Shown: one piece after another, positions 2,729 to 32,000 of the stretch | How the letters are laid out: each line of letters opens with the position of its first letter | How positions within the stretch are numbered: the stretch's first letter is position 1 | Source of the DNA: Paramicrosporidium saccamoebae KSL3 | Lineage: Eukaryota > Fungi > Cryptomycota | NCBI GenBank assembly: GCA_002794465.1 | Contig: MTSL01000048.1 | Location: forward strand, 1-32,000 | Reading direction: 5' to 3' | Length of the DNA: 32,000 bases | Made by a program: the position numbers and the translations under genes | The notes under the pieces: model-generated | Database searches by the model: none | The model's input: only the letters and a program-made list of their open reading frames with translations | What the model was told of the DNA's origin: nothing

Positions 2729-2954
2729 AACACCACTATTGAGTGTTGCGATTCTAGATTCGTAGATAAACGTGTCAGATGTTGGGCTCATACATGTGTA
2801 TTGAACACTTTGAGGGCCGCACTTGGGAATTGAGTGTACAGGTTTGAACAGGATCCTCCTCCCCCTCCAGTGCAACGTTTTCAAATCTACATACCCGATT
2901 TTGCACTGCGCGTTCTTAAATTACCCATTTAGCATCTCTTTATTAGCAAATCAT

Positions 2955-3842
2955 TTACAGAGCCAGAGCGAGGGGAACAAGAACTGCAGCAGCAACCATC
3001 GCAGCGGCAGCCTTGACGTTCTCGGCGCCATTCCCTTCCTTCTTGGCGGCACCTTGTACCTTTGGCTTGGGTGGCTCAACCTTGGGCATCTTCTTCTTTT
3101 CGTCCTTCTTCTTCTCATCTTCCTTCTTCTCAACGGGAGCGGGGGGAGGAGTGGGCTGGACGGCGAATGCCATGCTGTTGCCACCCATATCGTTGGCCAT
3201 GCTGGGTCCAGCCAGAGGCAAGCCTTGTCCAGAAACGCTAATGTAGACATCACCAGTCATCAGATTGGGGTCGTTGGGGACGGCCCAGGTGTAGCCCTTC
3301 AGGGTGGAGCTAACAGTGGCAATCTCGAGGAGCGGAGTTGGGTTACCAACACGGTAAACGGCAATATCGACCATGGCGGGGTAGTTGCTAGTGATGGGGA
3401 AGTCCCACTTGATCTGGCAGTTGGTGCCAATGGCACATGGGCAGTCCTTGTTGGGGGATGTAACAAGGAAGGTGTTTACGGCATTGGGGACATCATTGAG
3501 AATGGTGAATGTGCTTGATAGACCCTCAGAGGCACCGGGTTGGGGCGCTTGGGATCCCCAGACACGCAGACAGTACCCAGCGGCAGTCTTGAGCTCAGAG
3601 GGGATCTTCCAGGAGTACTTTCCAGCCTCGCCAGGAACACCGGACGCGATCATCAACGGGAATTGGAGCACGTCGGGGTACATATCGACCAAGTCAATGT
3701 TCACGAACCCAGTGTTGGAGCCATCCCACTGGATGTTCATCACATCACCAGCACTGTAGGTCATGTTTCCGGGGGAGATCACCTTGGGGTTGCCTGCAGC
3801 GACCACTGCGAGAAATAGGGAGGCGGCGAGGGAAAAGATCAT
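2955..3842 (-). CDS. Predicted GPI-anchored surface protein with two Kre9/Knh1-N-terminal-like Ig domains and a Lys/Glu/Pro-rich stalk
   Basis: ATG at 3842 gives signal peptide MIFSLAASLFLAVVAA. Two similar modules (VISPG..YSAGDVMNIQWD and VTSPN..CAIGTNCQIKWD, each followed by YxWxVP/IP), a PTPPPAP-KKEDEKKKDEKKK stalk, then NGA plus hydrophobic tail AAAAMVAAAVLVPLALAL. 295 aa. Confidence 0.8.
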   Translation of the reverse strand: MIFSLAASLFLAVVAAGNPKVISPGNMTYSAGDVMNIQWDGSNTGFVNIDLVDMYPDVLQFPLMIASGVPGEAGKYSWKIPSELKTAAGYCLRVWGSQAPQPGASEGLSSTFTILNDVPNAVNTFLVTSPNKDCPCAIGTNCQIKWDFPITSNYPAMVDIAVYRVGNPTPLLEIATVSSTLKGYTWAVPNDPNLMTGDVYISVSGQGLPLAGPSMANDMGGNSMAFAVQPTPPPAPVEKKEDEKKKDEKKKMPKVEPPKPKVQGAAKKEGNGAENVKAAAAMVAAAVLVPLALAL

Positions 3843-3978
3843 GGTTCGACTCTGTCGGTTTGTTGACGCTGGTAATGCAATGCCACAACAAAGCCCTTTT
3901 ATAGCCCGCCAATGTTTGGATAGAGCACTTGCTCTGTTGTCATGGTGCTCTTCCCGATGGTAGCCAATCAGGACGTCC
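3843..3978. promoter_or_regulatory. Probable bidirectional promoter (136 bp) between the GPI protein and dephospho-CoA kinase
   Basis: Head-to-head ATGs at 3842 (-) and 3979 (+). Inferred from geometry only. Confidence 0.5.
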
Positions 3979-4656
3979 ATGCAACTTATTGGATTAACGG
4001 GCGGCATCGCAACGGGGAAGACGACAGCCTCTGCCTATTTACAGCAACAGAATATTCCAGTAATTGATGCAGATTTGTTGTCGAGGCAGGCCTTGGAGCC
4101 CGGGACCAGTGGATATCAAAAGGCGTGTCGGCTGTTCCCTCAGGCTGTGGACAAAGGTGGCCTACTGAATAGAGGGAAGCTTGGAGACATCATATTCAAT
4201 GACGTGGCGGCACGGAAGAAATTGGAAGGAATAATTCACCCAGAAGTACAGTCTGCCATTGTCAAGACAATCATCTGGTATTGGTTTCGAGGCTATTGTC
4301 GAGTGGTCTTGGATATTCCACTCTTGTTTGAAACTCGAATGGACCGCTGGATGTCCTACACAGTCGTTATTACTGTATCCGGAGAGTTGCAGATAGGAAG
4401 ACTGATCGAGCGAAGTCATTTGACGCTGGAGCAGGCCGAGAGTCGGATTGCCGCTCAAATGCCAATCAATACAAAGTGTAAACTGGCTGATGTAGTCATC
4501 CAGAATGATGGCGACATTGGGGCTCTATACAAGCTTCTTGACGTGGCGGTTGTCCGTAGGAGGCCGAATTTTCTAATCCACACAGTCTTATTGTATGCAG
4601 CCCCGCTACTGGGATCTTTGGCATTGATTGTCGTAGGCCTACTCAAGGTCTTTTAA
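3979..4656 (+). CDS. CAB5: Dephospho-CoA kinase (CAB5/DCAKD family)
   Basis: IGLTGGIATGKTT P-loop, VIDAD, LNRGKLGDIIF, LEGIIHP, VVLDIPLLFE, RIAAQMP, ADVVIQNDG; C-terminal hydrophobic anchor as in DCAKD. 225 aa. Confidence 0.96.
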   Translation: MQLIGLTGGIATGKTTASAYLQQQNIPVIDADLLSRQALEPGTSGYQKACRLFPQAVDKGGLLNRGKLGDIIFNDVAARKKLEGIIHPEVQSAIVKTIIWYWFRGYCRVVLDIPLLFETRMDRWMSYTVVITVSGELQIGRLIERSHLTLEQAESRIAAQMPINTKCKLADVVIQNDGDIGALYKLLDVAVVRRRPNFLIHTVLLYAAPLLGSLALIVVGLLKVF

Positions 4657-7985: not shown

Positions 7986-9623
7986 ATGACCGTTACCAAT
8001 ACTAAGAGGAAGGCTTCTTTGGCCAAGCCTGACGATGGTAGGGCCTGCGGTGAATGTTCTAACAAGTTATTAGGTCCCGAGACTGTTGGGATACGGTACA
8101 GTTGTGACTATTGCTACAAGGATATCTCCTCGATCGTACGCCTGCAGTGCGCAGAATGTGGACTTCCTGCACCCGCAGGGACTGTTCAAGAGGGAGCCAG
8201 CGCCACTGGCACCACTAGTGCTACTGGAGCTTTCTCTGCCCACTCCAACTTGGAGGAGGTAGACCTGTGCGTGGAATGCTTTTCTGCTGGAGTCGAGTTT
8301 GGCCAGCATAAAAGGAACCACGCCTACCGGATACTCCGGCCACTTGACTTTGCCGTCTACCGGCTCGACTGGCGCGCCGATGAAGAGATTCTGTTACTGG
8401 AGGCGGTAGAGTCAAACGGCATTGGGAATTGGAATGACGTAGCAGAGCAACTTGGTACGCGGACAGCGGAAGAGTGCAAATCCCATTACATGGAGGTGTA
8501 TATGAAAGTGGAGCCGAATGCGCCTGCTTCACTTGGTAAAGATGGAATAGAAAAGTCGAGAGAGGCTTTGAAGGACGTTAAGAGGAAGCGTCCTCGTTTT
8601 ATGACCAGCGAAGAAGCTATCGCTGCGGCGCCTACTCCGCAAAGCGTCCCTGCTAACCATGAACTCGCCGGCTTTATGCCTCTCCGCGGTGAATTCGAGA
8701 CAGAATTTGAGAATGATGCGGAAGTGGCGATCAAGGACCTAATATTCATGGAAGATGATACGCCTGCAGAGCGACAACTCAAGTTTACCATGTTGGACAT
8801 TTACTCCATGGTGCTGGATAGGAGGGCAGCGAGGAGAGAGTTTTGCTTTTCACATGGACTTGTGGATTTGAAAAAACATCAGTCAGTCGACAAGTCGCGA
8901 TCAAAGGACGAACGGGAAATTTACAACATGTTAAAGCCATTTTCAAGGTTTGTGTCGTCTGAAGATTTGCAAGGACTGCTGGATGGCCTAACGAGGGAGG
9001 AGGAGCTTCGGAGACAGATTTCGCATTTGCAAGAATTGCGTCGACATGGGATCAGGTCCTTTGACGAAGTATCACCGTTTGAATCAGAAAAGAAACATCT
9101 GGAGCTCTATCTGAAAGGTGGCAGTACAATACTAGGTGGACCGCAGGCAAAGACGAATGCTCCCATTGAGGAACCCTTTCCATTGCCTACTCCTGCAAAA
9201 TTCTCAAAGTCCATGACATCCACACAAGCCACGCCAGTGCCCACAACCATCTCCATCCCTCGACCCATGACTGCCGATTCAAGCAACGTCCCCACGCCCA
9301 GTGTCACGCCAGTCAATGGGAGCATTCCGCTGGCGCCTGCCAGTAGCGGTGGCCGAAAGGCATCCACACCGCTTAATATTTCCCATGCGGAAGGGGTGGA
9401 ACTTCTCAGCGAGAAAGAGCGACACTTGTGCTCCATCCTGCGGCTTTACCCGCGACTCTACCTCAGCATCAAGGATACACTGATCAGAGAATATCTCAAG
9501 CTGGGTGGACTGAAGAGGGCACAAGCAAGGGCAGCTGTAAAGATTGATGTCAACAAGACAAGCAAACTGTATGACTTTTTTGTGGCCGCTGGATGGATCA
9601 AGCCGCCTGCTTCTGGAGAATAA
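7986..9623 (+). CDS. ADA2: Transcriptional adapter 2 (SAGA subunit; ZZ, SANT, SWIRM)
   Basis: ZZ finger CDYC..CAEC..DLCVECF..H..H; SANT WRADEEILLLEA..GIGNWNDVA; GFMPLRGEFETEFENDAE; SWIRM LSEKERHLC..KIDVNKTSKLYDFF..GWI. Probable in-frame 36-nt intron at 8038-8073. Confidence 0.96.
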   Translation: MTVTNTKRKASLAKPDDGRACGECSNKLLGPETVGIRYSCDYCYKDISSIVRLQCAECGLPAPAGTVQEGASATGTTSATGAFSAHSNLEEVDLCVECFSAGVEFGQHKRNHAYRILRPLDFAVYRLDWRADEEILLLEAVESNGIGNWNDVAEQLGTRTAEECKSHYMEVYMKVEPNAPASLGKDGIEKSREALKDVKRKRPRFMTSEEAIAAAPTPQSVPANHELAGFMPLRGEFETEFENDAEVAIKDLIFMEDDTPAERQLKFTMLDIYSMVLDRRAARREFCFSHGLVDLKKHQSVDKSRSKDEREIYNMLKPFSRFVSSEDLQGLLDGLTREEELRRQISHLQELRRHGIRSFDEVSPFESEKKHLELYLKGGSTILGGPQAKTNAPIEEPFPLPTPAKFSKSMTSTQATPVPTTISIPRPMTADSSNVPTPSVTPVNGSIPLAPASSGGRKASTPLNISHAEGVELLSEKERHLCSILRLYPRLYLSIKDTLIREYLKLGGLKRAQARAAVKIDVNKTSKLYDFFVAAGWIKPPASGE

Positions 9624-9709
9624 TCAAGTATATAAATGTAATGTTCCTGAGAAGTTGGTTTATTTGACAAGAATGTTTTGGCTATTGAATGCTAGAAATT
9701 TCAGATAAC

Positions 9710-11119
9710 TCAGCAGCCGCCACGACGACATCTACAACGGCTCTTGCCACAACCACAACGACAGCGACGAGGTCGTCTTCTTACTCTGAGATTGCGACTC
9801 TGAGATGAGGAAGACCGAGAGACACTCCAACTCTGACTGCCACTCACACTTCTTCTCTTCCTCTTCTCTATCACCCTCTTCACATCAAACGCCACTGTGC
9901 TGCTCTCCGTGCACTGATTCACTGTTATATGGCGCACATGGTGACGATGCTTTCGCGGCTTCACCTTTATGAGCTTGCGATGACGACTACGCTTCTCCTT
10001 GGAGATCTTGCGGGATTTGCAGGCACGACGACGGGAACGAGAATAAGAGTCGCTGTAGCCACGCTTGTGGTGGTGCTTACCGGTGGCATGACGAGAAGAA
10101 TAACGGGAGGGATGACGTGCTTCTTTAACCGATGGCTTGTCGCTGTCCTTAATAACAGGCTTGTGGATATCAATGCGGGTTTCCTTACAGGTCGGCTTCC
10201 GAGACTTGTGGCATGCAGACTTTTTAGACAGAGTTGGCTTTCGGGTGTCACTTCGGGTCTTTTGGCGAGTGTCATGAGTCTTGTGGCGGATGTCATGAGT
10301 CTTTTGACGAGTTCCTTGACGAGTGTCTTGGCGAGTATCTTGACGAGCGTCTCTCCTTGTTGACACGGTATTCTTGGACTTTGGATGCTGACGACCATGG
10401 CCAGAATTACTCTTGCTGCAGCTCGAACTTGAAGATTTGGAACTGCTGGATGAGCTGCTTGAACTACTTGAGCTGCTTTGAAGCTTCAATGTCTTTCGAG
10501 CATGATGGACATGAGGCTTCCCCGGATGCTGAATCTGGGCGTGCACATGTGGCTTCGTAATCTTTGGCTTTCGCATCAGCTTCTTAGGAGCCTTTGGTTT
10601 GCTCACCTTGTAAGTCGTGACAGTTGTGCTTGAGCCCGAAGTGCTACAAGTGTTCGGAGTCGAAGAATCAGAACTGGGACATTTGTTGATTTGCTCGAGT
10701 AGCTTGTCGGCTGTCTTTGTAATCTTGTTAGTATCGACAGGCACCTTTTGCTTTGACTTTTGCTGCTTGCGCTTGTCAGTCTTGGAAGTCGGTTTCCTAA
10801 CTTGGGTATGCTTGCGTCGCTTACCATGGTCACTGCTACTAGAGTCTGAAGAACTGCTGCTCTCACTCCCACTGCTGCTACTGCTGCTTCTGGAAGAGAC
10901 GTGATGAGGCTTTTTCTTGTGCTGGCGATGCGTCTCTTTTTGTTGCTGCTTGCGTACCTTTTCTTTCTTGGCACGGCGATCCCCAATGACCTTTTGCACG
11001 GCAGCTACAGTCTCCGATCCCATTTCTTCGTGTCGTCTCAAAGATTTTGGACGTATCTTGCCCTCATTTAGCGTGGCCAAGACGATGGGCACCGTCAGCA
11101 AGCACAGAACCTTGTACAT
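9710..11119 (-). CDS. Secreted Ser/Lys/Arg/His-rich low-complexity orphan protein with Cys/Arg-rich C-terminus
   Basis: 469-aa ATG ORF. Signal-peptide-like MYKVLCLLTVPIVLA, poly-Ser runs, DTRQ-type repeats, ending RRRPRRCRCGCGKSRCRCRRGGC*. No family recognised. Confidence 0.78.
   Translation of the reverse strand: MYKVLCLLTVPIVLATLNEGKIRPKSLRRHEEMGSETVAAVQKVIGDRRAKKEKVRKQQQKETHRQHKKKPHHVSSRSSSSSSGSESSSSSDSSSSDHGKRRKHTQVRKPTSKTDKRKQQKSKQKVPVDTNKITKTADKLLEQINKCPSSDSSTPNTCSTSGSSTTVTTYKVSKPKAPKKLMRKPKITKPHVHAQIQHPGKPHVHHARKTLKLQSSSSSSSSSSSSSKSSSSSCSKSNSGHGRQHPKSKNTVSTRRDARQDTRQDTRQGTRQKTHDIRHKTHDTRQKTRSDTRKPTLSKKSACHKSRKPTCKETRIDIHKPVIKDSDKPSVKEARHPSRYSSRHATGKHHHKRGYSDSYSRSRRRACKSRKISKEKRSRHRKLIKVKPRKHRHHVRHITVNQCTESSTVAFDVKRVIEKRKRRSVSGSQSWSVSRSSSSQSRNLRVRRRPRRCRCGCGKSRCRCRRGGC
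10235..10355 (-). repeat. Coding minisatellite (12-bp DTRQ-type units, then KTHDxRx units)
   Basis: Translation DARQDTRQDTRQGTRQKTHDIRHKTHDTRQKTRSDTRK; repeated CTCGTCAAG / ACTCATGACA on the minus strand. Confidence 0.85.
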
Positions 11120-11374
11120 TGTTGGTCAACAGATTCCTGCAACGCCATTTTATACTCCGCTAGTAACTATTTTCTTTCGGAAGCATCACGATCTGCTTGG
11201 ATTCTACTTATTAACAAATGAACCAACTCTATCCATGATCACCAGCACGAATAAAATTTAATATCTTAATTACATAGAACTACATGCAATTATGCATGTT
11301 TACACTGAATGGCTTCAATGCATTTCAGCGCGATTTGGATACCCTGCGACCAGAGAAACGGCTTTTATTTATTC

Positions 11375-12442
11375 TTAAACTGCGTGAAATTGTTCAATCA
11401 GCTTGGAAGCACTCCGTAGAGTCTCCTCTACATCTTCAGATGTTCCCAACGACGGATTGACCTCCACCAAATCCATCGAGACAAGTCTTTTAGTCTCTCC
11501 CAGCACTTTGATAATCTCCACTCCCTCTTCAATTTTTAATCCACCAGGCACGGGGGTGCCAGTGGACGGAGCATACTTGGGGTCCAGTGCGTCAATGTCA
11601 AAGCTGAGATGAATTGGATGCTCGCCCCTTGGGTCAATCGTCTTCAGGGCGTCTGTGATAACCTTGCAAACATTACGCCCTTCTTTGTTGAAACGCGTCA
11701 TGGGATATTCCATCATTTCCAGACGATCAATGGTCTCTTGTTCTGGCTCATCAACGTCGCGGAGTCCAATGTATACAACTCGACTGGTCTGGATAAAGCT
11801 TTCGCGACCCGTATTGACAGATTCCAGCCGCTCTTTAGCCCAGGAAAAGCATCCCAGCTCAGCCCATCCTTTCTTATCAAGCCCAGCAAGTAATGATACA
11901 GGGCATCCATGCAGATTTCCCGAAGATGTGGTAGTTGGTGTGTTAATATCCGCGTGCGCGTCCACCCAAAACACAATCAGCTCGGGTTTTTTAAACTCCA
12001 CCGGGGTCCTTTCCTCTAGTGCCTTTTCAATGATGTTAGAAATGGCGGAAACGCTTCCGATCGCAATACTGTGATCTCCACCTAATGTCAAAATCTTGGG
12101 AAGGACTCCCTTCTTCACAAGTTCCATGGTAGTTCCAAAAATGGAATCATGCAGCTTTAGGTTGGTAGCTGCAACTGCCTCTGGTCTAAGAATCGGGTTC
12201 TTGTTGGTACTAATGATTTTCTTGCCCTCACCAACAACAACACTGGTGAGCTTGGGATCGACAGCCTCCTCAGAGAATGCGCAAAATGTTAGCAATTTTT
12301 CAGGAGCCAGCTCCACACCGGCCTTGCGTTGTCCGTGGCGACTAGCCGCGAGAACAAACATTTCGGGAACATCCTGTATAGTATTAGTATTTTTAGCGGC
12401 CGCCGTTTGAGCGCCAGAGGTGGAAGTAGTAGCGGGGGTCAT
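11375..12442 (-). CDS. CAR1: Arginase
   Basis: GGDHSIAIGS, WVDAHADINTP, SGNLHGCPVS, YIGLRDVD, HLSFDIDALDP, GTPVPGG, DLVEVNP. First ATG at 12442 (ORF-track start is GTG); 355 aa. Confidence 0.96.
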   Translation of the reverse strand: MTPATTSTSGAQTAAAKNTNTIQDVPEMFVLAASRHGQRKAGVELAPEKLLTFCAFSEEAVDPKLTSVVVGEGKKIISTNKNPILRPEAVAATNLKLHDSIFGTTMELVKKGVLPKILTLGGDHSIAIGSVSAISNIIEKALEERTPVEFKKPELIVFWVDAHADINTPTTTSSGNLHGCPVSLLAGLDKKGWAELGCFSWAKERLESVNTGRESFIQTSRVVYIGLRDVDEPEQETIDRLEMMEYPMTRFNKEGRNVCKVITDALKTIDPRGEHPIHLSFDIDALDPKYAPSTGTPVPGGLKIEEGVEIIKVLGETKRLVSMDLVEVNPSLGTSEDVEETLRSASKLIEQFHAV

Positions 12443-12624
12443 CACAACACACTTTGCTTCAGTTCCCCATTTATACGCATGGCCAAAAAAGGTAATTTGA
12501 TACACACGTGCTCCAACACTTGCTCATATCCAGATGAGTCATACTAAATGGCAAGAGATTATTGTAATGTTCTAAACATATCGAGATGACCAGTGCATTC
12601 CTCTTATTGGCCAAATCGAGCCCA

Positions 12625-12633
12625 ATGACTCAT
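12625..12633. promoter_or_regulatory. Perfect Gcn4/AP-1-type site ATGACTCAT upstream of arginase
   Basis: Exact 9-mer about 185 bp 5' of the arginase ATG. Function untested. Confidence 0.35.
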
Positions 12634-12924
12634 CCATTAGGACCGACTTGGGATCGTGCCACTGTATGTATTGTAAGGTTTGCAGTCAAGAAAAATAGGA
12701 TTTCCTAGAGATCTGTAAGGTTTACAGTAGAGGCTTGCGATCTCCAATCCATAGGTAGGATATACTCTTACAGTTACTGAAGGGCTCTTTGTCTCTGGTT
12801 CCCTGATATAATTCAACTTGCTTTCATTCTATCTTACGCACTTATTCATTCCCACCTTATCTCATTCTATTTCACTCGCTGAGAATCTAATTTATCAGGA
12901 TTGTCTATGAAACTACAACCAGGC

Positions 12925-15856: not shown

Positions 15857-18800
15857 CTATGAGAGGAGGAAGCTGCCGCTGCCTTCTTCAATAGCCATGA
15901 GTAACTTTGCTCTCAAAATATCTTTAGAACTGTATCTTGGGAGTTTTAGATAATTCGCACAGGTCATTACGGTGGGCAAACTTTGGTCGGGATGGTCACA
16001 GGTGCGACAGACAACGGTGAGCGCGGGCCTCAGTTTGGCCCAGCCCCCACTTGGCAATTGCGGCCCACCAGTTAGAAATCGAATCAGACGACCTTTGTTC
16101 CCGGGATCCATCTCTGAGAATACCTCTGCGAGCCATTGTATCTGTTGGTTTTCCTTGGTATAGCCGTGATCGGCTTTGATTTCGCGTAGAATTGTTTGGG
16201 GAACCCAGTTTTGATTACGTTCGCCGTTGATTTGACGCAAGAATTCGTCGACAGTAAATATCCTGAAGGCTTCAAAGGGAAGGATCAAATTGAACGCCTC
16301 TACAAATGCTATCCCGGCCTCCTTTATACTGGTCTCCAAGATTAGACGCAAAATACAATCCAGATATTCGTCCAAGTTAGCCTGTGACAAGATCTTGCTT
16401 TCCCCATTGGGGCACAACTCGACTTGAGAGAAGGCAGGATGGACAAAGGCAAAGTCGGATAGAGCGCTGTTAGGTAGCTCGTAAAGTTTCTTCAGCGAGT
16501 TGGCCATGTCAGGATCAACCCGAGCAAGAGTTCGCAAAGAAAGCGGAGAATTTTTCCCCAAGAGGTATCCAACAAATACTTCATTTAGAGGCAGGTCCAG
16601 GATCCTATTGTCCAAAATGGCACGCGCGACTAAGAGCCCCAATTGAGAGAAACACTCTTTCCGAGCTATCGGCGACGGATAGAGTCCACATTTCCATTGT
16701 ACCTGCTCAGAAGTAGCATCACTCAGCCACATTGATGACGTTTGCACCAGCTCTGAAATCATGGAATAAAATTCCAAGGTTGGGCCCTATATGCATTATA
16801 AACAGAGAATGATATATACCAAGCCGACCCCAATGTCTCCATGAAATTGAAACTCTAGGATATACCGCTTATCAGTCGCATACCATGCCAATGCTCGTGT
16901 GGAATGGTCCTCAAATCTATCGCGATCGACCATAATCTTTACCCTTTTAATTCGAGCCAACTTGACTATAGAGTCACTTGGGTCGATGCCTGTCTCCGCT
17001 TTATATGCCGTCTGAATTCTCTAAGGATCAAAACTATTTCAGAAGGGTACATCAAGATATCGGGGTGTTCCGAAGCTTGTAGCCACCAAATATTCAACCT
17101 TTGTGTCAAAGTCAAACAAAAATGGAAATCTCTGCATTAGTCCGTGCCAAGCGGGGGGAATATAGCCAGCAGATACTAACAAGACTTGTTTTAACTGCCT
17201 TTTCAACTTTCGCAGCAGCCTCAAGTTGTTTAAATGACTCAAAAGATTAGGTTCCTGGCAACAAGTTTGCGAGGCCAAATCCAAGCTGTCAAAGCAGGCT
17301 CTCAAATCCTCAGACATTGGAGAGTAAGCTTCTTGGCTAGCCTTTTCAGCGCGGCCATGCTGGATCCTAATTTCGATGACATTATTGAAGAGAGGTCCAA
17401 ATGCTGAGGCGAAATTTTCAATCTTTTCCATTCCATGCAGCGTGTACGATAAGATGCACTTTTCTGCATCAAGCCCACTGATAATGTTGTCATTGATTTT
17501 CATAGAGCACTTGTATTCAGTCCAGTTCACAGATGACGTAGGTTGTTTTGCTGTCGACATGTCTACGGACATGTTTAACAACGCTTCTGTGGACATTGGC
17601 TGTTCAGAAATGGCCGAGAATATGTCTGCAGGAGAAGACATAGGATCCACAGTAATCAGTCGTGAAGAGATGGACTGCCGTCCCTCTATCAGAGCAGAGA
17701 ATGAAACCTTTACAGGACGGGCGACAAACATTAGCGGCTCAAGTGGATGGCCGGATCCTTTCGGAAGCTCCAAGAGAAGCATTGGGTATTCATGGTCATG
17801 GCGGCAAATATACTGCTGAACCTCGTCCATTGTCTTGAGTAACTCGGGTATGCTATCCGGATCGTTCTCCAGAGCAAGCTCTCGGAGGGATGCTATTATA
17901 CCCTTCCACTTGGACAATTCCTTACTCCCACCTTTAAATTTCGAGAACAATGCAGTTTCGACATCAAAAGCCAACTCGCTTATTGAATTTGCGCCGTAAG
18001 GACAGTCCAAAACCCGTGCCGCCTTGGTCAGTGCTTTCTTAAATAAAATATTCAGCTGGTCAACTCTCCATCCCGAGGGCTCACTGGTAAATTTATACAT
18101 GGTGTTATGGCTCTCTGGCACACTTTCAAACAATATAATCAACGATATCAAGGCCAAAACGCATGTGCTTGAGTTACGAGTCACAACAGTAGAGCAAAAG
18201 TTTTCAATACAACCTTCTAGTAAATTCACGTCATTGCTACCCTGCAAGCATACCCCAAGAGATGCAATCATACAAAGTGTCTTTGTCTCTCTTGAGCAAG
18301 GAAGATATAAATGAATGGCGTTTAAGATTTCATAAAAATCAAAGGTCAAGTCATCAGGTATAATATGCTTTTGTTCCTGAATACATAGTGACACTTGAAT
18401 CCGCGGAGACAAGATCAAGTCAAGTTTGCCGTTCTTTGGTATCACCTCGATAGGGAGACGACTGATGACAGAGTCATCGGGATATAACAAAGGAAGTATT
18501 GCTTCCAGAACCCCAATAATAGTTGGTTCACTCTGATCGCTAATGCTGGCAACTTGTGCATTCAATTGAGCCATGGAAAGTTCCATAATGTCACGAACAT
18601 TGCCACTTGGGCTTGCTAACAACAATTTTGCATAAAGCTTAAAGGAAACTAGCCAAATAGCAAGGTCTTTTAGTTCATGGCACAAGAGTAAGAAAATGCG
18701 GGCCATTTCACGATTTCCAGCAAGCAGATCAAAAATGGCCGGAGAATTTGCAATGCTTTGGTATATTTTCAAGATTTCTAGCAATTTGCCCGAGTCACCC

Positions 18801-19562
18801 GAGCTGGATTTTAAGAGAATTTCCAGATCTGGCAACACTGGAACAATGAAACCTTTATAGTCCTCAGGCTTGGCGGACTTTGCCAAAGATGTAGCGGCTT
18901 TGAGGACCGAAAGTTGTGTGGCCCTTGAGAAAAAGTCAAGATGAGACAGCAACGCAGGCAAAGAGCCTGACCTTAGGGACTTTCGTGGAAATCCTTGGGT
19001 GAAGCTTGCCAGACAATCAATTGCTGCTTCAGCTAGGTCGATAAACTCTATGTTCGTGAGGAACCCAACCAGGACATTTAAAATGCCATGCTCAATCATG
19101 TCTTTAGTTGCCAATCTGGAATGATCGGTAATAATCTTGATGCAACGACACGCAGCTATCAGGACCTCAGGGTTCAAACATCCGCTATCAAGGAATTTTG
19201 CAAGGATACTGCCCAGACCGCCAAAATCATTGTCCTGGTTAGGAGCCACCTCGGCAAACGTCTCTGTAAATGTCAGGAGAAAGTCGTTCGTATGATGAAG
19301 TTGCATTATCAGCTGCGTATCGTCGCCCAAGGCAATGCAGGCCTTGATGTTCTCAACTTGTGGTAGCAGGGTTCTTTGCTGCACTAAGATGAGATAAGCT
19401 CGGGGGCAGTACGGGTTTGAAGCATCGACAGACCGGCCGGGTTAAATCCTCCGGTACTAGAATTCTGCCACTCTTCCTCATCGGAATTCCCAGTACTCTG
19501 ATATCCAGAAGAGTGTCCGTCTACATGCTATAAATAATCATACGGAGCCTGATACCCTCCAT
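15857..19562 (-). CDS. UFD4: HECT E3 ubiquitin ligase, UFD4/TRIP12 family (ARM repeats plus HECT)
   Basis: Firm introns 17021-17050 (30 nt) and 16787-16819 (33 nt) join ARM region IEFIDLAEAAIDCL..LSHLDFFS to GVGL|GPTLEFY and HECT C-terminus LPTVMTCANYLKLPRYS..EGSGSFLLS*. The 5' extension to ATG 19562 via introns 19384-19412 (29 nt) and 19521-19555 (35 nt) is inferred and less certain. About 1190 aa. Confidence 0.9.
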
Positions 19563-19928: not shown

Positions 19929-21085
19929 ATGCCGACTCATATGCATCATTCATTAGAGAAGATTAAAAAAATTGACCTCCACACGCACATTATACCCGAA
20001 AGTTGGCCAGACTGGAACAAAGAATTTGGCCGTGGACGCTGGCTCACCATTCGACACGATGCCGATGGTGCAAAACTTATCAATGCCGATGGGACGCTCT
20101 TTCGGGCAGTGGAGAAGAATTGCTATTGTCCAGCAAAGAGATTAGAAGAATGTGACACTACTGACGTGTCTGTCCAGGTTCGATCGACTGTACTGGATTA
20201 ATAGCAATTAGGTCTTGTCTACTGTCCCTGGAATTGGATTCAACTACGGTGCACCGTCACAGGACGCACTCCGCGTTGCCCAATTCCTAAATGATCACAT
20301 TGGCCAAGTGATAAAGAGCGAACCTAAGCGCTTTGTCGGATTGGGTACTATCCCTCTCCAGGATTCTGACTTGGCAATTATCGAACTCAAGAGGTGTGTG
20401 ACCGAACTCGGCATGGCGGGTGTTCAAATAGGGAGCCATGTAGACGGTCGCAGCCTTGATGATTCCAGTCTGGAAAAGTTCTGGACCACCGTGGAGGAAT
20501 TGGACTGTGCTGTTTTTGTCCATCCTTGGGACATGTCCGACGCTGAAAGGGTCCAAAAGTACTGGTTTCCCTGGTACAAAATGTCCGATTTTTAATTTTA
20601 TAGGCTGCTTGGAATGCCACACGAAACCTCAATCGCACTGGGTAGTTTGCTTCTAGGCGGAGTGCTAGAACGACATCCCAAGTTGAGAATCTGCTTCGCC
20701 CACGGAGGAGGGTGTTTTCCTGCACTAATTGGGAGAATTAGCCACGGGTTCCACGCTAGACCCGATCTGTGCCAGACTGTAACTACCACTGACCCCAAGT
20801 AGCCCACATACAACTCTCACGTAATGCTGTAGAAATCTTTTAAAGCAAGTTTATGTGGATAGCCTGGTGCACGACCCAGAAATCTTGGAATTGCTAGTGA
20901 AAAAGTTTGGCGAGGATCGCATTATCCTTGGTAGCGACTATCCGTTTCCGCTTGGCGAAATTGATCGACCAGGCCAGCTCATAGAGACCACTCAGCTTGC
21001 CAAGGAGCCAGGCGACACTGAACGAATCCGCCAAAAGTTACTTTGGAAGAATGCCGTCACATTCTTAAAGCTGCCAGATTTTTAG
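19929..21085 (+). CDS. ACMSD: 2-amino-3-carboxymuconate-6-semialdehyde decarboxylase (amidohydrolase 2 family)
   Basis: join(19929-20177,20212-20573,20604-20798,20833-21085); introns of 34, 30 and 34 nt. Restores KIDLHTHI, VQ|VLSTVP, LGTIPLQ, GVQIGSHV, FVHPWDM, PW|LLGMPHET, FAHGGG, YVDSLVHD, GSDYPFPLGE. Confidence 0.95.
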
Positions 21086-22783: not shown

Positions 22784-23753
22784 TCAATATACCCGGTCAA
22801 ACCCTCGTTCTGGGGGCTGCAGCCAATTTTGATTGTCATACTGACAATTTCCCTCAATGACATGGAATGTGTATGCATTTCGGGGATCCTCAGAGAGATT
22901 AGGGCCGCTTTGATGCACAACGGATCCATGAATCAGGACTAGCGTTCCCTTTGGAATCTCCAACTGAACGAATCGCTTATCTTCAAAGGTGTGTTGGGAT
23001 CCTTGAAAGCAAGTCTCAGTCCCAGCATCGTTCCTTACTAATCGGCTCGTTATTGGATACTCTGACATCAATGAACCAACCCGAGAATCTACCTTTGTGT
23101 GATCCGGGAATAAAGGATAGGGTCCCATTTTTAGCAGTGCAATCGTCCAAGGCAAACCAGAATCCTATCGCACTATTTGGCTCCGTGTACAGAAATGTAG
23201 AATCTTGATGGGGCACCACCTCGCCACCGATTCGGGGATTCTACACATGAATTTGCACCATCCAACTTGCCTTGAAAATGATCATGCTTTGCAGTATCAC
23301 TGGATGCTCAAATCCAAGCTGTCGAAATATCTCAATCAGGGAACTCGAGTGAGTAAAGTTGCGAAAAACTGAATCCTTTAAGTGCAATCCTACAAATTCC
23401 CATCATTATAGCCGACTCGTACCATGGCCAATCTTGTTGAGAGCTCGCTCTTTGGGAACCACAAGTTCACCTTTGTCATTCAATGCACCGGCTTCATAAA
23501 AGAACGAAATGTTGTCGCCACTGGCCAGAAAATATTGACTGTGCCGCTGTTGGCTGTTCTTTGTTACAAATCGAGTTACAGGATGGGACTCGGGCTTTAA
23601 TTGCTCGGCGAGCATCTGGGCACGATTTCTTAATTGTTGAATCTGCTCTTCCGAAAGAAAGTTTTTGATCAAAAGATAACCATCATTATTGAACTAGGTA
23701 TTTTAGTCAATTCCCGAAATTACTGCTTCCAAGTCCAAACCAGCAACGGGCAT
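22784..23753 (-). CDS. PHYHD1: Phytanoyl-CoA dioxygenase family Fe(II)/2OG enzyme (PHYHD1-like)
   Basis: complement join(22784-23061,23093-23240,23271-23389,23423-23693,23724-23753), 281 aa; introns 31, 30 (GC-AG), 33 and 30 nt. Motifs [27 protein letters not shown]|[42 protein letters not shown]. Confidence 0.94.
23241..23270 (-). other. 30-nt GC-AG spliceosomal intron (AAG|GCAAGT...GTGTAG|AAT)
   Basis: Removal deletes an in-frame TAG and restores the conserved IFK-xPxIGGEV motif; the donor matches the strong consensus typical of GC donors. Confidence 0.8.
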
Positions 23754-29658: not shown

Positions 29659-32000
29659 ATGTTCAAGAGTCTTTTGGGGGAGTCGTCAAATGTGCGAGTG
29701 GAAGAATACTCGGCAGGAGAAGAAGTCTACTCAAACGCCTCGAGCGCAGATGTTACAGAAACTGAAGAACATGTCACAATACATGCCAAGCGGGAGCCGC
29801 TCCCGTGGTCACTAAGAGGTCCATCATACAACAAGCCACTACCCGGCATACAGGGCTCTCCTATGCCAGGCGAAATGTCCCCATCTCCAATGCCCGCAAG
29901 TCCGTCCCGCAGTCCGCGCATTACAGCACGTGCAGGGTCGCCCTTTGACCAGGGTGAAGGGCAGGCTATCTTTGGATCGCCCAGGCCAGAGGTTCCAATA
30001 GATTCGGCATCGTCGGTCTCTGCACACGATGCTTCATCTGAAAAAACGTCGTCGCCGGTACTGGATCGTCCATTGAGTGGATTTAACAAAGAGACAATTG
30101 TAGAGACGGCACCGTTTATAGCCGTACCGATCCCCACTACGTTTACACCGCTGGTAATTGTCCCATCAAGTCCAATGGGGTACGACTACGCAGTTAGTCC
30201 GGGACAGAGTCACTCAATTAGTTCCTTGAGACAGGATTCTGTCGCCAGTCCTATGGCTAGTCCCATGGCTATGCCTATGATTGCCGTTCAAAGTCCGTTG
30301 AGTGCTGCACATGAGCGGAGTCCATATGTTAGCCCGGTACACGTGCACACCCCCGAAATTGTGCCAAATGCGTCACAGAGCGGTGTTTCGCCGTTAGATT
30401 TGAATGCAGGTCTGGATTCTAACAATGGGACGACTAGTCCTGCGCCGTCTTTAACGCTGGGAGAATTGCCAAGGGCTAGTCCGGCCCCATCGCTAAAGGC
30501 GCTGGAAGAGGGACGGTCTCCAGAAGCATTGAAACAGACAACTGCATTGCTTGGAGATAAACGGAGCCATTCACCATTTGACTCGCCCTCACAGCATGCA
30601 AAAAAGCAGCCTAAATTGGCTTTGATCGATCGAGAAAGATCTGAGAAGCTTTACAGGCACTACTGCAACGACTGGAGAGTTGAGCGGAAATATCGATCAG
30701 AGAGGTTCTATTTCCCGCAACTATTTAATGCTGCAAGACTACAATATGCACACATTGTTCGGAAACGAAAGGGAATTCCCCGTGAGTACCGCACAGTTGC
30801 CGAAGATGTGGATCCGGGCGCCATGTATCGACGCGACTGGCAAGTTCAGCGGCAATACTCTGTCCATCGCTACTTTGACCCGCAACTGTTCGATGAGGGC
30901 CACTTGAAACGGGTAAGGATGCCAATGACGAGGAATCAGAAAAAGAGGCACTTTAAGCAGCGAATGGCAGCTGTTGGGATCACTGACTACACCTCTCCAG
31001 GCGCAAAGTTGCGACTCGATTGGACAGTGTCGAGGAGGTACCCTGTGGAGCACTACTTTGAAGCACAGCTCTTTGACTCGATTATTTCCGCGGGCGATCG
31101 GTTACGCCAGGACTGGTATACTCTCCGGAAAAACAACTTGACCGCCTACCAGAATGGAGGTCTGCTCGACTTTGTCTATGCGACCCGGAGACTAAAGAAG
31201 GATCAGTCCATGTTGAGGCGTCTAGGCTCCCACACTCCGGCCAAGTATCCTAAGAGAATTAAGCCCCATTATGACGATCCGGGACAAAAATATCGCAACG
31301 ATTGGAAAGTGGAGCGCGAAAACAATGTCCATCTCTACTTTGATCCATCTCTGTTTGACGAGGAAAAGGCCCAAGCCGGAGTCACCTGTTGGAACAAGCG
31401 CATCTCCGAGCTACTTCACCGTGATATCCCCAATGACGAGCTGGAAGAAGAGAGAAGGATGGCGGAAAAGCAGGAGATGGAACGATTCCTGCTAGCCAAG
31501 TCAGAAGCCGAGCGCATTATGGCCGAAGAAAACACCAGCAACCATCGTCCCCAGGCCATGAGAGAGGCTGAAGTACAAAGGCTACACAAAGAAGAACAAA
31601 AACGAAGAACGGCCACAGAAGTGACACAAGCCAGAGATTCGTCAACCTCAATATTTGCACTGATAGATTCTCTTCAAAAAAGCAAAGGCGATGTAGACGA
31701 GAATGGTATGCAGTATGATTGGCAATTTTGGACAGATTTGTTTGGCGACCAGAGCATTGACGGCGAAACACGAAGCGAGGTATTGCGTCACATTCGTGAT
31801 CCGCAATATGCAGGCGTGCCGACGGAATTGAGACCGGCTCTGTGGATGTTAGCTTCGGGAGCGGCAGCATCGACAAACATGGATGGCAAGTATGAACTGT
31901 TCAAAGGAATCCCTTGTCCTCATGAAGACTCTATCTCGGCAGATGTCTGGAAAGAGATGGGCTCTCGCGGTTTGAGCGATGAACAGGCGTCATCGTTGCA
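29659..32000 (+). CDS. TBC (Rab-GAP-like) domain protein, Gyp5/EVI5-like, with Ser/Pro-rich N-terminus and a novel internal repeat; 3' truncated by the window
   Basis: My translation: open frame from ATG 29659 to the window end (at least 780 aa; absent from the ORF track because no stop falls in the window). DWQFW and GVPTELRPALWMLASG..PHEDSISAD mark the start of a TBC domain, preceded by a coiled coil. Confidence 0.82.
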   Translation, partial: MFKSLLGESSNVRVEEYSAGEEVYSNASSADVTETEEHVTIHAKREPLPWSLRGPSYNKPLPGIQGSPMPGEMSPSPMPASPSRSPRITARAGSPFDQGEGQAIFGSPRPEVPIDSASSVSAHDASSEKTSSPVLDRPLSGFNKETIVETAPFIAVPIPTTFTPLVIVPSSPMGYDYAVSPGQSHSISSLRQDSVASPMASPMAMPMIAVQSPLSAAHERSPYVSPVHVHTPEIVPNASQSGVSPLDLNAGLDSNNGTTSPAPSLTLGELPRASPAPSLKALEEGRSPEALKQTTALLGDKRSHSPFDSPSQHAKKQPKLALIDRERSEKLYRHYCNDWRVERKYRSERFYFPQLFNAARLQYAHIVRKRKGIPREYRTVAEDVDPGAMYRRDWQVQRQYSVHRYFDPQLFDEGHLKRVRMPMTRNQKKRHFKQRMAAVGITDYTSPGAKLRLDWTVSRRYPVEHYFEAQLFDSIISAGDRLRQDWYTLRKNNLTAYQNGGLLDFVYATRRLKKDQSMLRRLGSHTPAKYPKRIKPHYDDPGQKYRNDWKVERENNVHLYFDPSLFDEEKAQAGVTCWNKRISELLHRDIPNDELEEERRMAEKQEMERFLLAKSEAERIMAEENTSNHRPQAMREAEVQRLHKEEQKRRTATEVTQARDSSTSIFALIDSLQKSKGDVDENGMQYDWQFWTDLFGDQSIDGETRSEVLRHIRDPQYAGVPTELRPALWMLASGAAASTNMDGKYELFKGIPCPHEDSISADVWKEMGSRGLSDEQASSL
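30646..31359 (+). repeat. Five dispersed copies of a 28-aa protein repeat, consensus DPGxxYRxDWxVxRxYxVxxYFDPQLFD
   Basis: Copies at about 30646, 30811, 30994, 31087 and 31276; each has exactly 13 residues between W and the PQLFD-equivalent. Confidence 0.88.

Follow-up and report, generated by a model that had tools for sequence, protein, structure and literature searches.

A conserved 28-residue repeat of narrow distribution in a RabGAP1/Gyp5-like TBC protein of Paramicrosporidium saccamoebae

Several described proteins bind their partners through arrays of short motifs, as in Eps15, whose DPF repeats bind the AP-2 appendage, and in GW182, whose GW repeats bind Argonaute. Among TBC-domain regulators of Rab proteins, RabGAP1 carries a PTB domain in place of any repeat array. 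In Gyp5 and Gyl1 the proline-rich N-terminus binds the SH3 domain of Rvs167, and the C-terminal coiled coil dimerises (PMC6997364). Here we describe an array of 28-residue repeats in a RabGAP1/Gyp5-like TBC protein of Paramicrosporidium saccamoebae KSL3. The DNA analysed, called the window throughout, is 32,000 nucleotides long and comprises positions 1 to 32,000 of contig MTSL01000048.1 (assembly GCA_002794465.1), which measures 82,534 bp in all. P. saccamoebae, an intranuclear parasite of Saccamoeba, belongs to the Rozellomycota, and its genome (record MTSL00000000) has 7.3 Mb, 3750 genes, 47% GC and 76% gene space (PMC5701793). The gene in question lies on the + strand, as do all of its features given below, and the window holds its 5' 2.3 kb (29659-32000; 780 codons), an open frame that runs from the ATG at 29659 to the window end, where the open reading frame (ORF) is cut at residue 780. 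The repeat is genuine, is conserved and, in the DNA sampled, occurs in no gene other than this TBC gene. The TBC family itself is already known, whereas the repeat is undescribed and very narrowly distributed.

An earlier note on this DNA, made from its letters alone, had placed five copies of the repeat in this frame, and all five are found there with the exact sequences that it quoted, beginning at residues 330, 385, 446, 477 and 540. Repeat 1 (KLYRHYCNDWRVERKYRSERFYFPQLFN) occupies 30646-30729, repeat 2 (DPGAMYRRDWQVQRQYSVHRYFDPQLFD) 30811-30894, repeat 3 (SPGAKLRLDWTVSRRYPVEHYFEAQLFD) 30994-31077, repeat 4 (SAGDRLRQDWYTLRKNNLTAYQNGGLLD), a degenerate copy that starts 3 residues past repeat 3, 31087-31170, and repeat 5 (DPGQKYRNDWKVERENNVHLYFDPSLFD) 31276-31359. 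The D-W pair (D9-W10), described as invariant, and the R said to follow four residues after the W (R14) are present in five of five copies, and every copy is aromatic at positions 21-22 (in copy 4, YQ). Three linkers separate the units: linker 1 (AARLQYAHIVRKRKGIPREYRTVAEDV) at 30730-30810, in which the orthologues keep NAARLQYxHxPRKxxPIPR; linker 2 at 30895-30993, with conserved columns G97 H98 L99 ... K112 R113 F115 G123 I124 and a conserved helix, NQKKRHFKQRMAAVGI, at 30934-30981; and linker 3 (FVYATRRLKKDQSMLRRLGSHTPAKYPKRIKPHYD) at 31171-31275, in which M201, R204, L205 and P210 are conserved. Most linkers had been called basic, and the three together, which include RKRKG, KKRHFKQR and RRLKK, carry a net charge of +19 over 98 residues; the units carry +3 over 140 residues, and the whole repeat region +22 with an isoelectric point of 10.1. 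Directly after repeat 5 stands a helix with a conserved Trp (EEKAQAGVTCWNKRISELL, 31360-31416), which aligns with EERALREATDWSLMI and related sequences and is predicted to be helical in the orthologue P0001 (residues 607-629).

To score each copy we used leave-one-out profile hidden Markov models (HMMs), each trained on the other four copies, which were masked in the protein before scoring, and 1000 shuffles of the protein served as the control. The shuffle maxima lay between 5.1 and 8.8 bits, far below repeats 2 (44.4 bits), 5 (44.2 bits), 3 (32.0 bits) and 1 (14.3 bits, with repeat 1 of P0001 as its best match). Copy 4, at 4.2 bits, falls within the shuffle range and is not significant alone in the window, so that the significance over shuffled sequence on which the earlier claim depended holds for copies 1, 2, 3 and 5 and fails for copy 4 by itself. 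Judged by the orthologous positions, copy 4 is a genuine repeat: its counterparts in P0002, P0003 and P0004 are clearer (e.g. TLRADWYVRRPHDVTEYYNPMLFD), its counterpart in P0001 is as degenerate as the window's, and an HMM of 28 family units, which includes repeat 4, gives it 31.5-35.5 bits. Repeat 2 is the best-conserved copy, with 0.71 identity to the orthologues and 79% identity to repeat 2 of P0001. At the DNA level the copies are pairwise 33-69% identical, about half of the identical residues are encoded by different codons, and no DNA repeat longer than 17 nt is present: these are old repeats at the level of the protein and not the product of recent duplication. These figures, together with the conservation among orthologues, bear out the suggestion that selection has acted on the protein.

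A word-indexed search returned four full-length relatives (P0001-P0004) of 1115-1181 residues, 37-47% identical and all from SRA (Logan) assemblies; the window ORF matches P0001 (1166 residues, with PF00566/PF23436) at 47% identity across 100% of the ORF length. The recall of this search was poor (it missed the window's own protein and, once, the query parent P0001), and the claim of rarity rests on an exhaustive HMMER search, in which a profile of the 270-column region was compared with 1.84 billion representative proteins at E <= 1e-3. This returned 10 proteins, of which nine (P0001-P0008 and P0010) are the same TBC family; P0009, a Tudor-repeat protein, was set aside as a false positive. 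The sequences of all relatives come from Logan, JGI/IMG or ENA assemblies, and no annotated genome is among their sources. P0005, P0006, P0007, P0008 and P0010 form a distant clade with the same kind of TBC protein, in which the N-terminal motif and the C-terminal helix recur and the glutamine finger is again lost, and their unit reads RRGNKDDWQVQRxYPVDxFFEPSLFDE. P0007 belongs to a TBC gene that is split into pieces and has eight units in total. When metagenome contigs were scanned, the close-clade profile found no locus and the distant-clade profile found one further locus (L005), encoding an 872-residue member with two units. When the window and five related loci (92 kb together) were translated in six frames, an HMM of the unit matched solely inside TBC genes, and the repeat was not found in the TBC protein of Chlamydoabsidia padenii (P0132; Mucorales), the sole named TBC protein retrieved.

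The earlier note would have counted the lack of a Pfam match, together with homologues confined to related parasites, as support for novelty. This is the outcome: the exhaustive search places the homologues in a handful of the parasite's relatives, and a scan with 24,736 Pfam models gave no match on the repeat region in any of 10 proteins (the window ORF, the repeat fragment and the relatives), while among PDB sequences the unit profile had 0 matches at E <= 10 and the array profile found only ovalbumin, at E 1.9. A match to Biotin_carb_C stayed below threshold (20 bits, where the cut-off is 32.4), no single stretch of it passed, and we treated it as chance. We also observed that at 9061-12874 of a 136-kb ENA contig (L002) a distant-clade TBC gene is split into four called genes, with units in more than one frame; either introns or frameshifts, or assembly errors, could account for the split.

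Across 50 units in 10 proteins, the repeat has a core of about 20-28 residues, [RK]-x-D-W-x-[VT]-x-R-x3-[VILP]-x2-[FY]-[FYW]-x-P-x-L-F-[DE]. The constrained positions are R/K7 (45/50), D9 (46/50), W10 (47/50), V/T12 (43/50), R14 (48/50), F/Y21 (48/50), F/Y/W22 (47/50), P24 (44/50), L26 (46/50) and F27 (44/50). Searched with the HMM of the window copies, P0001, P0002 and P0004 each show five copies, in the same places, and P0003 shows eight, through an expansion of the repeat-5 type to four; the five array positions are retained in these four orthologues at only 37-47% overall identity. The close clade has 5, 5, 5, 5 and 8 copies and the distant members have 7, at least 4, 8, 4, 3 and 2, with a start-to-start spacing of 31-81 residues across the family. 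Within the close clade the spacing is fixed (54-56 / 61 / 31 / 62-63 residues) and each unit is nearest to the one that occupies the same place in a different species, which indicates that the five-unit array predates the close-clade species. A different pattern of similarity is seen in units 5-8 of P0003, which are nearest to each other and to unit 5 of P0002, and in P0005, P0007 and P0008, whose units are nearest to others in their own protein (0.71-0.82 identity); this within-protein similarity points to recent amplification of units. Each duplicate in P0003 carries the trailing helix along with the repeat and leaves the reading frame intact, and repeated duplication of the unit together with this helix argues for a self-contained module. 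Identity to the orthologues is 0.56 in the repeats, 0.50 in the linkers, 0.39 at the start of the TBC domain and 0.20-0.26 in the flanks, so that within the 780 residues only the N-terminal motif (0.59 over residues 1-70) is better conserved than repeats and linkers.

The four full-length relatives P0001-P0004 share one layout, consisting of the N-terminal motif, an S/P-rich stretch, the repeat array, an acidic/helical spacer, the TBC domain (PF00566/PF23436) and a long C-terminal helix. Both Pfam families score above their cut-offs in P0001-P0004, P0006, P0008 and P0010; in P0005 this is so for PF00566 (35.6 bits; cut-off 25.2), and PF23436, at 26.1 bits, stays just below its cut-off of 27. 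The description of the repeat as fused upstream of a TBC domain therefore holds for the full-length orthologues, but the window contains only the start of the domain (31714-32000, by alignment to P0001 and to RabGAP1 4nc6), truncated by the window end to about 90 residues, in which Pfam does not call it. In the same alignment, motif A (LRPALW) lies at 31828-31845. The conserved N-terminal motif, DVTETEEHV...EPLPWSLRGPSYNKPLPG at 29749-29847, is a candidate SH3-type proline ligand; it occurs in both clades as PxPWxxRxPxY[DN]KPLP, with a fuller form ETEEHV...PLPWSxRxPxY[DN]KPLP. Because the gene is conserved at about 1150 codons (from orthologue lengths) in so reduced a genome, it is probably functional.

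With P0001 as the query, the nearest TBC domains in the PDB are those of RabGAP1 (4nc6, E 1.5e-22) and RABGAP1L (3hzj), followed by TBC1D4 and TBC1D1. This similarity and the predicted C-terminal helix of P0001 agree with the Gyp5/EVI5 type that had been proposed and suggest, at the level of similarity, membership of the RabGAP1/EVI5/Gyp5-Gyl1 subgroup. None of the 8 members that cover the glutamine finger (YxQ) keeps the Gln, and all have Pro or Ser there; in P0001, whose catalytic positions fall within residues 834-875, GYCPAL aligns with GYCQGQ of RabGAP1. The arginine of IxxDxxR is kept in 3 of 9 members (P0001, P0008 and P0010) and absent in P0002-P0006, and the window reads ISADVWK at 31933-31953, with Lys in place of the catalytic Arg of 4nc6. 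The family thus has neither a glutamine finger nor a conserved arginine finger, the two features of an active dual-finger RabGAP. Since both fingers of the established TBC RabGAP mechanism, reportedly described by Pan et al. in 2006, are lost or eroded, the family is probably a pseudo-GTPase-activating protein (pseudo-GAP), as the earlier description of a Rab-effector-like protein would have it. P0001-P0003 (loci L001 and L004) end, after the coiled coil, in a conserved G-x-[KR]-I-[FY]-[KR]-[IV]-COOH, possibly a docking motif; P0004 has no such tail.

Structure prediction of the repeat segment, which had been proposed as a check, gave no confident fold, either for the array alone or within the full-length protein, and the small binding module proposed in the same note is still a putative one. 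AlphaFold2, run on the array with five sequences, yielded a mean confidence (predicted local distance difference test, pLDDT) of 45 and a predicted template modelling score (pTM) of 0.21, with short helices over the first half of each unit. For full-length P0001 with nine sequences, the TBC domain and C-terminal helix mostly reach a pLDDT of 80-95 (the helix, residues 1034-1143, mostly 80-91 and 72 in its last block), and the array about 40-66. The helix in linker 2 (pLDDT about 66-71) is the sole part of the array above 60 in both models. The repeat region falls on the disordered side of the charge-hydropathy boundary, S/P-rich low-complexity stretches surround the repeats in the window protein, and aromatic residues make up 19% of the units and 14.7% of the whole region. 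The hydrophobic moment of the consensus, taken as helix or strand, is not above that of shuffled sequences, 46-91% of which reach it.

The reading that we favour, although we hold it with slightly less than even confidence, is that the repeats form a lineage-specific array of short modules, independent of one another, which together target or scaffold a RabGAP1/Gyp5-like protein that is dimeric and catalytically dead. The array would be an ancient feature of one lineage, set in the N-terminal arm of a RabGAP1/EVI5/Gyp5-type TBC protein that probably dimerises through its long C-terminal helix, as in Gyp5/Gyl1, and whose TBC domain, without the glutamine finger and in most members without the arginine finger too, probably binds a Rab and does not switch it off. 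The units would act as equivalent docking sites, ten per dimer in P. saccamoebae, whose avidity would hold the protein on a partner protein or surface, and their number could be changed by unit duplication. Copy 4, which alone lies within the shuffle range, and the S/P-rich surroundings might suggest an accident of chance or composition in low-complexity sequence, or a functionless recent DNA duplication, but this explanation is refuted by four copies at 14-44 bits against at most 8.8 bits in 1000 shuffles, by D9, W10, R14, P24, L26 and F27 shared at 44-48 of 50 units in 10 proteins, by the 33-69% nucleotide identity between copies without DNA repeats and by the retention of the array in orthologues of 37-47% identity. 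Several observations weigh against the favoured reading. The close-clade linkers are nearly as conserved as the repeats (0.50 vs 0.56) and the spacing there is fixed, so that the functional unit in the close clade may be the whole 240-residue region and not five beads, and both features fit a single folded domain or a long composite interface better than free beads. An aromatic content of 19% is unusual for a disordered ligand array, and the models that show no confident array fold rest on shallow alignments of 5-9 sequences only. The pseudo-GAP status of the P. saccamoebae protein depends on its orthologues and on the Lys at the arginine-finger position, the YxQ position lying beyond the window end. 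Lastly, when we compared the unit by eye with the LC3-interacting region (LIR), NPF, DP[FW], FxDxF, clathrin-box and FFAT motifs, and with the W-acidic, NPxY, YPxL, RVxF and minor-site nuclear localization signal motifs, to our knowledge none of them fits.

The conserved linkers, together with a spacing fixed across five species of 35-47% identity, would be explained if the 240-residue region were a single structural domain, formed from internally duplicated elements and acting as one unit, for example in binding a Rab or cargo; the conserved signature proper to each copy position, the 14.7% of aromatic residues, the short helices predicted in every unit and the linker helix at about 66-71 would also be in keeping with it. 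We nonetheless consider such a domain rather unlikely, as the copy number varies from 2 to 8, the distant-clade linkers vary in length and sequence, P0003 has duplicated whole units in tandem with their trailing helix and with the frame intact, the charge-hydropathy balance is on the disordered side and the AlphaFold scores are low (pLDDT 45, pTM 0.21). Less probable still is a polybasic aromatic arm, whose basic linkers would attract acidic phospholipids (or RNA/DNA) while Trp, Phe and Tyr insert or stack. The charge of the region and its linkers and the invariant aromatics of each unit suit this idea, and a peripheral-membrane role suits a Rab regulator in general, but the conservation is positional, with mixed invariants (D9, W10, R14, P24, L26, F27), and more than compositional, the units are near neutral, the hydrophobic moment does not exceed that of shuffles, and the sequences between units in the distant clade, read by eye, look mostly acidic or neutral. 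Returning to independent modules, a bolder form of that reading, which we think doubtful, is that the unit of about 24 residues, D-W...R...[FY][FYW]-x-P-x-L-F, is a recognition module not seen before, either an aromatic mini-domain that folds by itself or the ligand for a receptor that only Paramicrosporidium-like Rozellomycota possess, and that it retargets a dead RabGAP (a Rab-GTP binder) to a parasite-specific membrane or structure, with the copy number tuned by duplication.

The genes of the window are tightly packed on both strands, and their Pfam families include UCH, WD40, ADA2, arginase, SPX-EXS, HECT, RRM, protein kinase, GRIP, dephospho-CoA kinase and Kre9/KNH; no tRNA or Rfam family was found in the window. 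The order protein kinase-GRIP-TBC is common to the window and the related loci L001 and L004, and GRIP-TBC occurs in L003 as well. In all three loci, which come from genomes related to Paramicrosporidium, an ABC2-type membrane protein comes next, followed in L003 and L004 by a DEAD-box helicase. Elsewhere in the window, a HECT ORF (15857-16777) and a TRIP12-like TPR ORF (17039-19384) lie 262 nt apart on the - strand and are probably one gene for a UFD4/TRIP12-type E3 ligase, broken by an intron or frameshift. Two short ORFs, at 20215-20595 (+) and 22784-23155 (-), match only parts of the Amidohydro_2 and PhyH profiles and could be exons of intron-containing genes or gene remnants. The Kre9/KNH ORF (2955-4007, -), with a domain of fungal cell-wall type, overlaps an ORF on the other strand (2823-3518, +) where the local GC is 55% over a kilobase, and the ORF at 2249-2728 has a sub-threshold match to DUF3245; both pointed to a fungal affinity. 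The window's arginase is 100% identical to a protein encoded on MTSL01000048.1 at these coordinates, and in an arginase tree it stands away from named fungi and beside an arginase from the Arcella intermedia transcriptome (P0036, EukProt). The Arcella sequence thus groups with the Paramicrosporidium-like clade, apart from named fungi; the Arcella culture could have carried a related rozellid parasite.

The Rozellomycota branch at the base of the microsporidian radiation, and almost no work has been done on their cell biology. With 3750 genes, P. saccamoebae keeps a TBC protein that its orthologues put at about 1150 residues, and the array is the best-conserved non-catalytic part of that protein besides the short N-terminal motif. 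If the array does target a Rab-binding pseudo-GAP, membrane traffic in an intranuclear parasite would have been rewired in a lineage-specific way, and the known protein repeats would gain a new short module. The biological claim is a modest one, because lineage-restricted repeats are common in the accessory regions of trafficking proteins. The unit profile is also a very specific marker for Paramicrosporidium-like genomes in metagenomes, since it rests on nine true matches in 1.84 billion proteins.

Compared with the short repeats described in Pfam, the unit of about 28 residues has a length within the usual range and no sequence match. The array resembles those of Eps15 and GW182 in repeating a short motif whose aromatic and acidic residues are invariant, in its variable copy number, in spacers that vary in part of the family and in having no confident predicted fold. 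It differs from both in that the unit has about 20 constrained positions instead of 2-4 and is far more aromatic, the close-clade spacers are conserved, and there is no sequence match to the DPF or GW motifs. With respect to Gyp5/Gyl1 and RabGAP1/RABGAP1L/EVI5, the DW...LFD-type repeat is found only in the present family (1.84 billion proteins searched), throughout which the glutamine finger is lost; Gyl1, too, probably lacks the catalytic residues of a GAP. The likeness to Gyp5/Gyl1 extends to the two ends of the repeat protein, which has a long C-terminal helix and a proline-rich N-terminus with KPLP, and this N-terminal motif, as a candidate SH3 ligand, may by analogy be the counterpart of the proline-rich SH3-binding region of Gyp5/Gyl1.

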